A stretch of 64,000 nt of DNA from Saccostrea cucullata (GCF_032062105.1 NW_026930000.1:1-64000); one strand, 5' to 3'; positions 1,478 to 54,343 are shown, counted from the first letter of the stretch. Notes: generated by a model from the sequence alone, not told the origin. Numbers and translations: made by a program.

Positions 1478-4400
1478 CTGGATGAAGGAAGTGACGACAA
1501 TTTCTACAGCTTTCGTTTCCGCTTACTAAATGGTCTATCATGCATTCCATTCGACAAGACTTTTCACTGTAGAAGGAATACCGTTTCAGAGGGTTCCCAC
1601 TTTCGCTGACCTTTAAACATTTACCATAAGGATCACCAAGAAAGCTTTTCTGTAAAAGAAATTAAGATGCAAAATGGAATCAAAATTACAGCATCTTTGT
1701 TATGAAATTTAAACATAAGATGATTTACGAGTCCTTTCCGTATTTTGATGATTAGAACTAGTATCCAGTGACTTATATATACTATACCTAGGTCCCTGGC
1801 GTATCCGAGTAAATGGAAATAGAAACAATGTTTTTTTTTTAAATTTGTAATGTACCGAAAGCTTCATATTATTATATATGTCATTTTCTCCACTAAAATT
1901 TATATAAATATTTTGTTTTTTACATATTTACATTGATTTTTAGCCATTAATTCTTCAATTCATTAATGGTCCCAAGTCATGTTTGTTTTGAATTTATTTG
2001 CAAGTACACCATTTAAAAAATCATGAAAAAGCATTGTAATGAACTGGGCCCGTTACTTTATTTCCATACTAGAACACAGTAAAGAACTACTTATTTTTTG
2101 TAAAATTGTGCTTCAATTTCTTTATATCTTTAATTTGTTAAACAATGGTGCTTTTAGCTTAAAACTGTTAGTAAAAATTTTATCAACAAGTTTAAATTAG
2201 GAAAAAACTATTATTGATTAAAAAAAATGCATGTAATTTCATTCTCAAATTAATTTGTTTTATGTGTCAAATTAATAAAATTGCAGTGAAATAATTCATA
2301 ATGGCATATCTTAACTAACTATTCTATAAATACACAATTTCTTTTTAAAAAAAGTTTGGGTGCATTCCGCACTTGCAGTAAACTTTATTATTACACCCCC
2401 TCTTTTCTAAAGCCTGAATCCGCCCCTGAAACTTTCGCATTTACTTGTACGGTATCATACCCTTGTTTTACTGATGATGGCCTCAGCTGATAATCCAGGA
2501 GCCACCAAAAATCCCCCCATGGAGGGGAGGGGGTCCGTCCCTGGGTCATGGAGAACTACCTGCCCACAAAATAAAATGTTGTCTAAATCAGTAAAATCAT
2601 GCTAATATGTACCTAAAATTGGTAGAGAGAGAGAGAGAGTATATGTTGTTTGCCTGTAAATTTATGTTTGTTTCGAATAATTTGAACTTTGCATCCATTA
2701 GAGTGCGGAACAAATTTTATTTTCAATGAAATATGCACGAGTCACGTATTTTTCGAAGAAGAAATATGTTTAAAAAGGGATAAATTCATAATAAAAAAAA
2801 ATAAATCAATTATGTTCTATATTTTTTAACTAACGTACACAATGGCTCTGCAAATAATAAAAAAATCACAAAGATGGCAAATAAACATTAGTTTTAATAT
2901 TTCAGCCTCTGAAAATAAACTCCAAAGATGCCTCCAGGGATTTAAGTTCATTAATTTTTCATAGAAAAGGGGGAGCCGGTTCATTTACTTATAGTATTTC
3001 AATAGAAATGTGCTCAATTATTTTCCGGATCATTCTTTTGTATACGTTGCCGATTATTCTTTCATTTTTAAGTATTTGTTAGAATACATTAAATGGCTTT
3101 TATGATTATTCCACAAGGGATAAAGTATTATATCCGGAATCCTGTTGTTGTTTTTTTTTTCAAATTACATCTGCCTCAAAACAAAATACACGTAGGCATT
3201 TAATTTAAAGCTCCCCGTAATCAAAGATTCAGGAGCATGTAGTTTTTGCCCTATTCGTCCCTCTGTCTGTGTAATTGTTTTATGTCTGTACGCAAAAACT
3301 ATAACCTTGCCCTTTACATTTGACTGGGTGGGGATATGGCTTTCATATTTCACAGGTGTATTTCTTGTGATAAGATCTTTTGGGTACAACCAAATTTGAC
3401 CTCTTGACCACCTGACCTTGGAGTTTGACTCACTTTTACAAAACATAATAAACTTTAGCCATAAGTTTTGCGACTTTCCAATTGGTATAAATATTTTTTA
3501 CCTTTTCAAGTTAGGAGTTTGACCCGCCTCATAAAAACTTAACCTTAACCTTGACCATAACTTTCGAACAATTGGAAATAGGGCATTCTTATTTCACAAA
3601 TGTAGTCCCTGTGAAAAGATCTTCATCTTGATACCATCAATTTTGACCTTGACATTTCACTTGCATTTGAGAAACGACAACCTTCGCCATAAACTTCCAT
3701 ACGATGTCTTGTTTCATTTGATAAAAGTAAACTACCAATCGTAGATGCATATATCTATTCAGCAGGGTCTAAAAGCTATACACGGCATAACATGCACGAC
3801 CCTTTTACCTTGACCTTCGATTTTGAACCACTTTTTAATAAAAAAAAAAATAACTTAGCCATAACATTTAAATTGTTGGTGTTTTCATATTTCACAGGTA
3901 TAAGTATATATATTTTCCTGAGACAAGTCATTTCTTTTCCAATCTGTGTAACAGAAATTAATCTAGTTGTCCGATATCAACAAACATCCTCAGGCCACCA
4001 TCAGGTCCAGTTCTTGTAAAACACACCCCCATTTCAGAGTCTGATTTTCCTTTGAAAACTTCTGCCGTCGCCAAAAGCTGCCATAGGGGGTCAGTAGTGT
4101 TTCAAAAACACATCATTCTATAGATCATTTTTTCATTTGATCCTGGTTAGTGGTTAGCTTACTTTTAGTATATGTACACGTATATGAATGCTTTAAAAGA
4201 GGATTGTTTGTTTGTTAGTACATGTGTATGTTGTCTAACGTCCCTCTCGAGAATTTTTCACTCATATGTAGACACCATTACTTGCCGGTGGAGAGCTACA
4301 AGCTTTGTCCTATGCTCGACACTAAGGGTCATTGAGCAGGGAGGGATCTTTTTCGTGCCAGCACCTACTGCGACACGGGACCTCGGTTGTTACCCACAGT

Positions 4401-51600: not shown

Positions 51601-54343
51601 TGTATCCATAGCTGAATCATCACAGGCAAATGTAACTAACGTAGATGAAGAGATTCAGAAAATGCCTCCTCTACCCAGAGATGTTAGAGAAAAGTTGATC
51701 AATGATTTTAATGTTGCACTCAGAGATGTCTATGTACTTGTGGTAATTGGATTTATTTCTAAAAAATGTACGCTCAAAAAATCTATTTTTATTTGTCTTC
51801 CACCAATGAACTTAAAATAAAAATGATATTATTTTGTTTTGTAGAATGAAGATAAAGGTGTAGAATTTTTCCATGAGGTTGTGAACTGTTCAAAAAGTCC
51901 ACCAAATTTCGTAGCCAAATTCATAGTCAACGATTTATTAGGTATCTACAATGAACATGATCAAAAGATAAGAAGAAGGTAGGTGCATGTAATTAAAATT
52001 CAAATAAAAGAAATGAATTGAGAAATTGTTACACAGAATGGAACTTCTACCTTAACTGTTGTATAGTACTTATTCAATACTTTATGTTGATAAAAAATTC
52101 ACTTTTCTTGCCTTTAAGTCCAATTTCACCAGATATAATAGCCGAGATTGTTGATCTAAAGAAAAGTGGATATACAACAAAGTCACATTGCCTTCAGGTA
52201 GGTCATGCGATGTTTATTAACATTTGAGTATTATTTGTACTGTAACAGCTTTTTCTATAGATGTACATGAGTTTTAGCTATGTCGTTTACATGTGCATAT
52301 ATCAAATGAAAGCTTCTTCAAATTCTTTTTAAGTTAGTAGAAATGTATCTACATCAGTCTACACCTGACAGACCTAAGGATATAGTGGATAGGAATGGTT
52401 GGCAGCAGATTATAGATGTAGAACTTCTCAGACCTGTCTGTATCCAGATTATAGAGGACAATCCCAATCAGGTTTGTAGGGGATGCATTAATTTTGCAAG
52501 TACAGTCAAACTTCATTATCTTGAACTCATTTGAACTGAGAAAAAAAAATTAGTATCCAGGGATTCTGGATATTGCTTGCTTGAGATTTTCAAATCAATT
52601 TGACTTGTCCATGGTATTCTAGAAATTGATGTTCGAGATACCAAAGTTCAGCTGTAAATGCATACTGAACTGTGGAACTTGTAAAACCACACTGGTTTAT
52701 TTAATCACTTTACAGGGGGACCTTGTTTCCCGACAATTGAAAAAGACCTAAGGGGCACTTTTAGGGCAAGGGTGGTTAATAGGGAATCACCATAAAGAAA
52801 AAGTCCGATTTTCTGTCCATCTGTCTGTCTGAAATTCTGTCTGTCTGAAGTTCAGCTGTAAATGTATTTGACCGGACCATTACTCAGAAACTATTGGAAG
52901 GATTTGTCTGAAAATTTGTACACATATTATCCACCATATGAAGTTGTGCACCTGATATTTTCATCTTGATTCGATTATTATTTTGAATTTTACAGGTGTT
53001 TTTTCATTTTTATTTTGTGGTTTTGTAAACAGGACAGAGCAATGCCTTTTTTGTGGCAGAAACTATTGCAAGGATTAATCTGAAAATTTGTACACTTATT
53101 ATTCACCATATGAAGGTGTGCACCTGGAATTTTCAACTCTGAAAAATTTTGTTAATTTTTTTGCATTTTACAGGTTTTATTTTTTATTTTAATTGACACA
53201 GTTCATTTTGGGCTCATGTATAAGGTTTGAGATATAGAATCTAGAATATCTGTTCAAAAATACTACAGCTTAAAACTGTGTCATAAAAACTTTAAAAAAA
53301 GAAACATCATCAAGTGTTAAAAACAGTTTTTACATTGCACAGAAGATAATGTAATTTCATTTGTCTCTTGGGAATAATGCCAAACACACTGGACATGCAT
53401 CCAGTTAAAGATAAATTAATGAGTTTGGTGTTGGAAGTTGTTAAGGCATATCTACACACTTATCAAGCGTGTGTGTGTTATCTAATCTCCAGGGAATAAG
53501 GCTCATATAATATATATAGAAAAAAATCTCTCTTCTCTTATTCTCTTAATTGTAATTTATTGTCTGTCAAAGCACTTCATTACTGGATGACCAGCTCTTT
53601 ATTTTCAAGATGCATTTCAAATTGCTATATCAAGATTAATTTGATTTTGTATAATGGTTTTTTTTTAACAATCAGTTTGCAGAGTGACATAACACATAAT
53701 TGCAATTTATTTTTTTAATGCAGAAATAAAAAAAAAATAAAATGAAAAAATAAAAAAAATTGTTACAATGGAATTACAATGCATTGTATTGATGTTTCAT
53801 TTGGTTGCACCTTTGTTTCATTCATTAAGAAACATGATGAGCAATTATATTTCACTGCAAATTTTTGTAAGTAAATTGTGAACACCTCTAGATCCATAAA
53901 GTATTTTTGAATTGGCACCTTCTCTGAAAAACCCAGCGGGGGGTATTTGTCCCTATTGGACAGTTCTAGTTTATAGTTGGAATGCCACAGGAAATTTCTC
54001 AACTTATATCTCAAATACGATTTGAATGAAAAACCATTTATGGACATCTGAGTTTAAGACATTGAATTTATAAAATTTGTTCCATCAAATCTCTTAGATA
54101 TATTTCTGTAATTCCAATAAGTGTTTAGATACCAAATTAAAATTTCTAGTCAGTGAATGATATTGCAGATGCTTCTTATTTTTCTTATCACAGGTTAAAA
54201 AATACTGCAAAGGGAAACAGGACAGAGCAATGCACTTTTTTGTGGCAAGAGCGATGGACTCAACTCAGAAGAAGGGAAATCCTGCAGTGTTGAAAAGTCT
54301 ATTCATAGAACTTTTAGAAGATATTAAATTAAAACAAAAATAA
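48631..54343 (+). CDS. GATB: Glutamyl-tRNA(Gln) amidotransferase subunit B, mitochondrial, about 12 exons
   Basis: Approximate exons 48631-48728, 48949-49111, 49705-49819, 49946-50139, 50585-50707, 50803-50916, 51161-51244, 51511-51742, 51845-51978, 52119-52197, 52333-52471, 54194-54343. Motifs [75 protein letters not shown]. Confidence 0.95.
48757..48905. repeat. 74-bp perfect tandem duplication in GATB intron 1
   Basis: aaaattgtgttgacacatc...aaaacatat at 48757 and 48831. Confidence 0.9.
49165..49547. mobile_element. Foldback element whose two arms each carry an outward-facing tRNA-like cassette
   Basis: About 120-bp imperfect inverted arms; A-box (tagctctgttggtagagca / tagcccagttggtacagca) and B-box-like (gttcaaatccc / gtttgaatgcc) motifs in each. 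Confidence 0.65.
50192..50255. repeat. 64-bp hairpin (MITE remnant)
   Basis: ctttacgctcctgtattt ... aaatacaggagcgtaaag. Confidence 0.6.
52720..53972 (+). mobile_element. Degenerate HINE-like element in the last GATB intron
   Basis: (tctg)n microsatellite, two 'cagaaactattg...caccatatgaag.tgtgcacct' units, and a 3' cagcggggggtatttgtccc..tggacagttctagtt end shared with the 39463-40588 element. Confidence 0.7.

Follow-up and report, generated by a model that had tools for sequence, protein, structure and literature searches.

Inserts of neighbouring DNA inside intronic HINE-type elements of Saccostrea cucullata: probable scars of templated break repair

Introduction

How does host-gene sequence come to lie inside a Helitron-type element? 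Such elements are known for carrying gene fragments, and the route by which the fragments enter has been argued from end products. The question is raised by a stretch of 64,000 nt of the oyster Saccostrea cucullata (GCF_032062105.1 NW_026930000.1:1-64000, one strand), referred to here as the window; all coordinates are those of this whole stretch unless marked otherwise. Three of its introns, in genes of the ASIC, UTP18 and GATB type, contain HINE-type elements, which are non-autonomous Helentrons, and these elements hold four short inserts copied from DNA close by. The initial annotation had described three of the inserts and suggested that they may expose the first in-place step of gene capture, by arrays that may be break-prone. 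We propose, as the probable explanation, that the four inserts are independent scars of microhomology-primed, templated break repair of a generic kind, that is, an in-situ form of the filler-DNA model.

Inserts and Their Donors

The three elements, the four inserts and the four donor segments are as follows.

3200–4125, plus strand: HINE-like element 1, in an intron of an ASC/ASIC-type channel gene, with a GTCY remnant, ~145-bp monomers and a palindromic right flank
3959–4037, plus strand: insert 1, made of the ASC exon pieces 3959–4011 and 4016–4037 with the 4 bases TCTT between them
5525–5639, plus strand: donor 1, within an ASC-family coding exon (minus strand, ~5494 to at least 5958)
39466–40586, plus strand: HINE element 2, beginning 32 bp past the end of a UTP18 exon
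39707–39819, minus strand: insert 2, ~113 bp, 95 of them templated, with the inverted copy at 39709–39803
39224–39318, plus strand: donor 2, made up of the final 68 bp of a UTP18 intron and the first 27 bp of exon 39292–39434
52745–53971, plus strand: HINE element 3, in the last GATB intron; its 5′ limit is approximate
53027–53058, plus strand: insert 3, 32 bp from the GATB last coding exon
54215–54247, plus strand: donor 3, within the GATB last coding exon 54194–54343 (GatB_Yqey profile positions 108–148)
52847–52864, plus strand: insert 4, 18 bp, 17 of them templated, in element 3 between the microsatellite and monomer A
52644–52660, plus strand: donor 4, unique intronic DNA upstream of the approximate 5′ limit of element 3 (~52745), not exonic

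Inserts were detected by a MAFFT column-occupancy scan and by exact-match scans across family copies, and duplications were checked by self-comparison of the window, which has zero runs of N. The two pieces of insert 1 are direct copies of 5525–5577 (52/53 identical, E 3e-21) and 5618–5639 (22/22); 40 bp of the donor are omitted between them, and TCTT stands in their place. Insert 2 is inverted: its templated part is the reverse complement of donor 2, at 94% over 96 columns (E 8e-36), followed by ~16 bp in which TTAATTTTC is copied again around a filler of 12 nt. In donor 2, the intronic part forms the end of a dispersed repeat for which 38 matches were scored at other loci. Because insert 2 also carries the adjoining unique 42 bp, it is a local copy rather than a further member of this repeat. 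Insert 3 matches its donor at 97% (E 2e-9). Insert 4, absent from the initial annotation, turned up in the exact-match scan, where 52848–52864 proved to be an exact 17-bp copy of donor 4; by a rough estimate, ~3e-4 matches of a 17-mer within 6 kb are expected by chance. The insert is absent from 29 other copies of the family to which element 3 belongs (family 3).

Donors lie 188, 391, 1157 and 1514 bp away from their copies, and the copies are direct in three cases and inverted in one (insert 2). Identity between copy and donor ranges from 94 to 100%, with events 1 and 4 at 99–100% and events 2 and 3 lower (event 2 ~6% off, indels included). A search of the 1.17-Gb genome found insert 1, insert 3 and the part of insert 2 outside the repeat only in the window and at the donors. 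The three local duplications first described inside intronic HINE-type elements thus stand, with matches far beyond chance, and the UTP18 insert, placed earlier at 39715–39808, is moved by ~5 bp. Their attribution to host-gene exons holds for ASIC and GATB; the UTP18 donor is mostly intron.

The host genes were identified by matching exons singly against references. The minus-strand open reading frame at 5494–5958 has a Pfam ASC match (E 1e-19) and matches ASIC1/2 chains in PDB (E 4e-7). In the 143-bp exon 39292–39434, the 47 codons of 39292–39432 correspond to human UTP18 residues 502–548 (E 3e-9). Pieces of GatB_N and GatB_Yqey run colinearly across seven open frames at 48.9–54.3 kb, the last frame being 54161–54340. 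The Pfam, PDB and human UTP18 matches bear out the gene names given at first, ASIC, UTP18 and GATB. All four donors and all three elements lie inside the primary transcripts of the respective genes.

Structure of the Host Elements

Element 2 has an 11-bp subterminal inverted repeat (ATACCCCCCGC at 39466–39476, GCGGGGGGTAT near 40548), an internal complement of this repeat, (GTCY)n at 39510–39564 and an array of ~5.5 monomers of 146 bp; its 3′ end consists of the palindrome TGTCC-N5-GGACA followed by the terminus CTAGTT. Canonical members of family 3 share these left and right modules as well as the subterminal pair. Element 3, whose family has more than 1000 candidate copies genome-wide, retains the 3′ subterminal repeat, the same palindrome and the CTAGTT end intact, and its microsatellite (GTCY)n lies at 52820–52853; the 5′ subterminal repeat is degenerate. 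In 9 copies compared at their 3′ ends, CTAGTT is followed by T or G. In element 1, family homology begins at ~3200/3213 and ends at 4114–4127. Its monomers (3293–3841) match an array at 18322–19078, its right flank (4037–4114) has at least 15 genomic copies at 80–85% and contains the palindrome GTGTTT-caa-AAACAC, and a microsatellite remnant lies near 3250; the 5′ subterminal repeat is not clearly readable in this element.

Of the features that define a HINE, subterminal inverted repeats of ~11–15 bp lie near both ends in element 2 and in canonical family-3 copies, and only at the 3′ end in element 3 of the window. The short palindrome downstream of the 3′ subterminal repeat is found in elements 1, 2 and 3, as are a left-module microsatellite and central tandem repeats, with array periods of 145–172 bp across the three elements.

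Further observations concern family 3 and the transposases. The left module of element 3 (52700–52811) departs from the canonical form, with the subterminal repeat gone and extra bases around the GGAATCACC box; a search for a local template of at least 12 bp for these extra bases found none. Family-3 monomers start with TTTTGTCCGGACC(G/A)TT(T/A)CTCAG (52866–52890, 53020–53045), which resembles the 3′ palindrome and terminus TTTGTCC-loop-GGACAGTTCTAG (53938–53971) with the loop removed. This resemblance hints that the tandem repeats may have arisen from repeated terminator-like units. The junction motif CCGGACCG (window 53013–53073) occurs in 242 family-3 copies mostly as the variants CTGG, CCAG, TTGG or CCGA, a pattern of CpG decay that suggests germ-line methylation of family-3 HINEs. 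As for the transposases, at least 150 matches to Helitron_like_N (the Rep domain) were scored among 471 candidates in the genome, most of them in uninterrupted frames of ~2000–2850 codons. Judging from these frames, many Helitron/Helentron transposase genes are apparently intact, and Rep is plausibly available in this genome.

Anatomy of the Events

Lost and gained bases were read from the alignment of each host element to family copies or to its own monomers.

Event 1: ~17 bp lost, 79 bp gained, at the boundary of the last monomer and the right flank
Event 2: ~26 bp lost, ~113 bp gained, at a monomer junction
Event 3: 15-bp consensus CCGGACCGTTTCTCA lost, 32 bp gained, at the monomer A/B junction
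Event 4: 8-bp consensus TAGACGAG lost, 18 bp gained, at the microsatellite/monomer A boundary

All four inserts fall within the element boundaries, with the left module on one side and the right module on the other. Each event combines a small deletion with an insert identical, or nearly so, to nearby DNA (8–26 bp lost, 18–113 bp gained), which is what templated repair leaves behind. The microhomology of a few nucleotides that such repair would use is present as well, at 2–7 nt wherever the junctions are readable, and it was for this signature that junction inspection had been suggested. Event 1 has 2–4 nt. In event 2 the left junction reads GAAAAAA and the right one TTTC, and event 3 has CA on the right and none on the left; the donor of event 3 is also loosely similar to the segment replaced. 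Template jumps are visible in event 1 (the 40-bp skip with its 4-nt filler) and in event 2 (the re-copied TTAATTTTC). The events depart from polymerase-theta-type repair in the position of the template, which there lies within tens of bases of the break and here 188–1514 bp away.

The timing of event 1 can be read from a relative. The read-level comparison covered the event 1 locus, with four low-share public runs from a single sample of a related organism. In each of the four runs, the relative's contigs (~92% identical) align to element 1 up to 3959 and again from 4055, with 35 letters where the window has 95, and continue into the unique 3′ flank to 4185–4203. The relative thus has the HINE at the ASIC locus at the insert-free size, and insert 1 postdates element 1. 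The spread of identities, 94–100%, leaves room for a difference in age among the four events, and some of the mismatches could also come from a low-fidelity polymerase.

We observe the anatomy of the events, donors in cis, the derived state of event 1 and the uniqueness of the inserts. The idea that the elements were repaired with neighbouring DNA, put forward in the initial annotation, is borne out in that the inserts are foreign to the elements, copied in cis, mutually independent and built like templated filler.

The further idea, that these insertions are a step towards mobilisation of gene fragments, did not hold up. In the strict sense, Helitron or Helentron capture involves a host fragment within the element boundaries, which is seen here, and transposed chimeric copies, which are not. 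Searching family 3 by pattern for copies whose spacing is expanded at the junction hit by event 3 gave the window as the sole match, so that the search revealed no insert-bearing copy elsewhere, and element 3 no longer has its 5′ subterminal repeat. From the sequence there is no sign that the elements moved after insertion.

Proposed Mechanism

We propose that a HINE already settled in an intron would have suffered an internal break or a collapsed replication fork, at which 8–26 bp of the element would be lost. A free 3′ end would then pair, through 2–7 nt of microhomology, with DNA of the same chromosome 0.2–1.5 kb away, on either strand. A polymerase would copy 17–95 nt, at times releasing the template and re-priming, and the far end would be captured through a second short microhomology and sealed. 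By analogy with known systems, the process may be polymerase-theta-type end joining or template switching of the type seen in break-induced replication mediated by microhomology (MMBIR). The break itself, the polymerase involved and the direction of synthesis are the parts that we infer. What makes the inserts noticeable in HINEs is the family consensus, against which they stand out.

Several points weigh against this explanation. Events 1 and 4, at 99–100% identity to their donors, lack independent confirmation by the assembled animal's own reads. Three of the four donors lie 0.4–1.5 kb off, while classical theta inserts are shorter and have their template no more than tens of bases away. Finally, the four events fall in 3 of ~13 HINE-like elements of the contig, against 0 of 57 elsewhere (Fisher p 0.005), and this clustering is stronger than expected under a uniform low rate, unless the window was chosen on account of its events. 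The last point leads to the question of whether HINEs are unusually prone to such insertions.

Frequency in HINEs and in Other DNA

All statements on rates are based on 110 kb of contig and 65 loci, each of 3 kb. The window was chosen because it contains these events, and within-contig rates are to be read accordingly. HINE-like DNA makes up ~11% of the 110-kb contig, yet it holds 4 of its 7–8 orphan local copies (p 0.004–0.007). The remaining orphan copies are 77683/79551 (114 bp, direct), 96.2/96.9 kb (~146 bp) and 45134/46228 (18 bp, inverted). The first of these (L074:3683-3796 / 5551-5664, contig 77683-77796 / 79551-79664) is a 114-bp direct duplicate at 92% identity, 1.8 kb apart, in unique non-HINE DNA.

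A different picture emerges outside the contig. None of 57 other HINE copies, taken with ~1.5-kb flanks, contains an embedded local copy of at least 16 bp, and three of the four events would be detectable in loci of the size fetched. At the contig rate, the 29 family-3 loci alone should contain ~7, and the probability of finding none is 0.001. Genome-wide, the junction hit by event 3 has normal spacing in 242 family-3 copies and is expanded in 1, which is the window itself, and the 80-bp monomer interior is normal in 157 and expanded by 18–50 bp in 0. An alignment of 30 family-3 copies (32 kb) contains one further short private insert, in L020, with no adjacent source. This 20-bp insert was rejected as a local copy, as no donor of at least 11 bp was found in its 3-kb locus, and another in L022, of 12 bp, is an adjacent slippage duplication. 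In the 29 other family-3 copies, indels of at least 3 bp are scattered over the length of the element with no pile-up at the hit sites, and the bins with the motif GTCCGG(A/T)CC contain 1 event (L026). Orphan duplicates also occur in non-HINE flanks (for example L016 763–804/1086–1127; L011 1721–1804/2921–3004).

These counts, together with the duplicates outside HINEs, do not sustain the earlier proposal that HINE arrays are break-prone. A per-element rate of 2–3% is compatible with 0 of 57 and also with one of ~800 scanned windows showing three scarred elements. Since this rate fits both counts, the cluster can be ascertainment.

Other local duplicates in the contig were not counted as orphan copies, being read as transposon structure. 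The pair 70619–70726/71148–71209 consists of terminal inverted repeats with a 9-bp target duplication. It belongs to a low-copy element of ~550 bp (L073:6619-7209, contig C12137 70619-71209) with 62-bp terminal inverted repeats (98%) and the 9-bp duplication CAAAGTTGC, one terminal repeat being partly tandem-duplicated (46 bp). The pairs 74202/74744, 81679/85696 and 100544/101964, read without inspection, are inverted-repeat pairs and likely terminal repeats. The pair 17374/17890 consists of 77-bp direct repeats (17374–17450 and 17890–17966, 96%) around a 440-bp repeat unit that also occurs at 15831–16236 and 25089–25356; it looks like an insertion with an unusually long target duplication, or a local duplication around the repeat. 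A further feature, at 28744–28836, is a perfect 39-bp sequence present twice with a 15-bp spacer, in otherwise unique DNA outside HINEs, and looks like a small recent local duplication.

Possible Exon Bias

The initial annotation had also raised the possibility that donors are biased towards exons. By a rough measure, exons make up 12–30% of the DNA within 2 kb of each insert. The first three donors all touch exons (p ~0.009); once the intronic donor 4 is counted, 3 of 4 donors are on exons (p ~0.04). With donor 2 mostly intron and donor 4 wholly intron, we do not regard a bias as established. The GC content is 50% in donor 1 and 42% in donor 3, against 34% in the window; a higher donor GC content would favour microhomology pairing. 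It should also be considered that exonic donors stay recognisable longer.

Alternative Explanations

The alternative that survives best, which we consider unlikely, is a fragility specific to HINEs. Here, pseudo-termini at the junctions, that is, palindromes like the 3′ hairpin and end, would be nicked in trans by a Helentron Rep/helicase or would stall replication forks, and the breaks would be filled from neighbouring DNA as a first in-situ step of capture. All four events lie at module junctions, with events 2, 3 and 4 within 15 nt of the motif GTCCGG(A/T)CC, and the family-3 monomer start is akin, once the loop is left out, to the right-flank palindrome plus terminus, as described above. 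The excess of orphan copies in the 11% of HINE-like contig DNA points the same way, and the number of Helitron_like_N matches makes Rep plausibly available. In addition, the microsatellite-array spacer of Crassostrea gigas HINEs, which corresponds to the site of event 4, is reported to be highly variable in sequence and length (PMC7492417). On the other side stand the absence of embedded copies in the 57 other HINEs, with ~7 expected in family 3 alone, the single expanded junction among 243 copies, and the lack of any indel enrichment at the motif bins of the 29 family-3 copies. Moreover, the motif was noticed only after events 2 and 3 were known, and the insert-bearing copies have not moved.

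In its fuller form this alternative is more doubtful still. It holds that degenerate copies of the 3′ hairpin and terminus at HINE junctions, through Rep nicking or fork stalling, would lead to repeated in-place breaks patched from neighbouring DNA as the first step of capture, that this would explain the hyper-variable spacer of oyster HINEs, and that GC-richer exons would be favoured through microhomology. Neither the family-wide indel positions nor the genome-wide spacing counts lend independent support to fragility at the motif. If a genome-wide excess in HINEs were true, transposase activity or hairpin fragility would be tied to the shuffling of gene fragments. On present evidence, generic repair scars made visible by the repeats are the simpler reading.

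An artefact of assembly or polishing, in which chimeric joins formed in repeat-rich introns, appears very improbable. The high identity of events 1 and 4 to their donors would fit such joins. The only public runs found, those of the related organism, do not have insert 1, an absence that an artefact also predicts, so that the contrast with the relative alone is no proof that insert 1 is present in the assembled animal. However, the copies in events 2 and 3 are ~6% different from their donors, including indels, which makes a simple mis-join of donor reads unlikely. Each event also swaps a short consensus segment precisely, with microhomology at the joins and with internal jumps in events 1 and 2, unlike a mis-join, and the break points 3959/4055 obtained from the relative agree with the deletion and insertion inferred from paralogues.

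Repair templated by the nascent transcript of the host gene, which polymerase theta could perform in principle as it can copy RNA, would explain why donors and elements share a transcription unit; it is hardly to be expected here, as any DNA within 1.5 kb of an intronic element shares its transcript, so that the pattern speaks neither for nor against it, the intron sequence in donors 2 and 4 excludes spliced mRNA, and the 40-bp skip of insert 1 does not have splice-site ends.

Further Features of the Host Genes

The inverted copy in the UTP18 gene, which we take by homology to encode a ribosome-biogenesis factor, has a predicted consequence for RNA structure. When 39200–39830 is folded as pre-mRNA, a near-perfect duplex of ~90 bp is predicted (−250 kcal/mol, z = −21 against shuffled sequences). 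In this model, the duplex (region 39224–39803) would bury the acceptor site and enclose the 143-bp exon. It may affect splicing and could cause exon skipping, back-splicing or RNA editing.

Two repeat structures lie in the ASC gene. The 750 bp at 4479–5228, in an intron between element 1 and the donor exon, are 95% identical to their own reverse complement and form a long palindrome. The segments 4225–4386 and 6782–6945, copies of a short repeat of very high copy number, are inverted relative to each other (87%) and bracket the ASC exon. The summed depth of this repeat in the relative's contigs is in the millions, and an adjoining loose-end consensus resembles the body of a tRNA-derived short interspersed element.

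Comparison with Known Systems

The elements share their layout with Cg_HINE and the wider HINE/DINE-1 group (PMC7492417, PMC4067079): a left module that holds a subterminal repeat, its internal complement and a GTCY microsatellite, central tandem repeats of ~145–170 bp, and a right module with subterminal repeat and palindrome. They differ in belonging to other families in another oyster genome, with the 5′ end of element 3 degenerate and the 5′ repeat of element 1 not clearly readable.

The closest precedent for the events is the filler-DNA model, developed for the stepwise acquisition of sequence by insect Hel1 Helitrons (PMC6544945) and invoked for the oyster Cg_HINE (PMC7492417). In both the published cases and the proposed repair at the present loci, host DNA is put into a rolling-circle element while an internal break is repaired, with short homologies between acceptor ends and donor flanks. 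The published cases were inferred from amplified chimeric families with donors on other scaffolds, whereas here single, unmoved copies have donors in cis at 0.2–1.5 kb, and for one event the empty ancestral state is visible in a relative.

Theta-mediated end joining in Caenorhabditis elegans (PMC4490562) has in common with these events the small deletion, the insert identical to nearby DNA, the minimal microhomology and the iterative priming. Its typical inserts are shorter and templated very near the break, in contrast to the 17–95 nt copied here from 0.2–1.5 kb. MMBIR and fork-stalling template switching (PMC8421209) likewise involve a nearby template primed by microhomology and multiple switches, and palindrome-rich DNA is a plausible trigger. 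The catalogued signature of that process is an inverted template within 100 bp, whereas only one of the four inserts is inverted here and all templates are further away.

The mechanism is thus already known in kind; what is less usual is the distance of the donors, their position in cis and an in-place step with an empty ancestral state. At these loci the filler step can be followed in place, with donor, acceptor, lost bases and microhomologies all readable, and they are useful as worked cases of how templated repair proceeds in the germ line of a mollusc.

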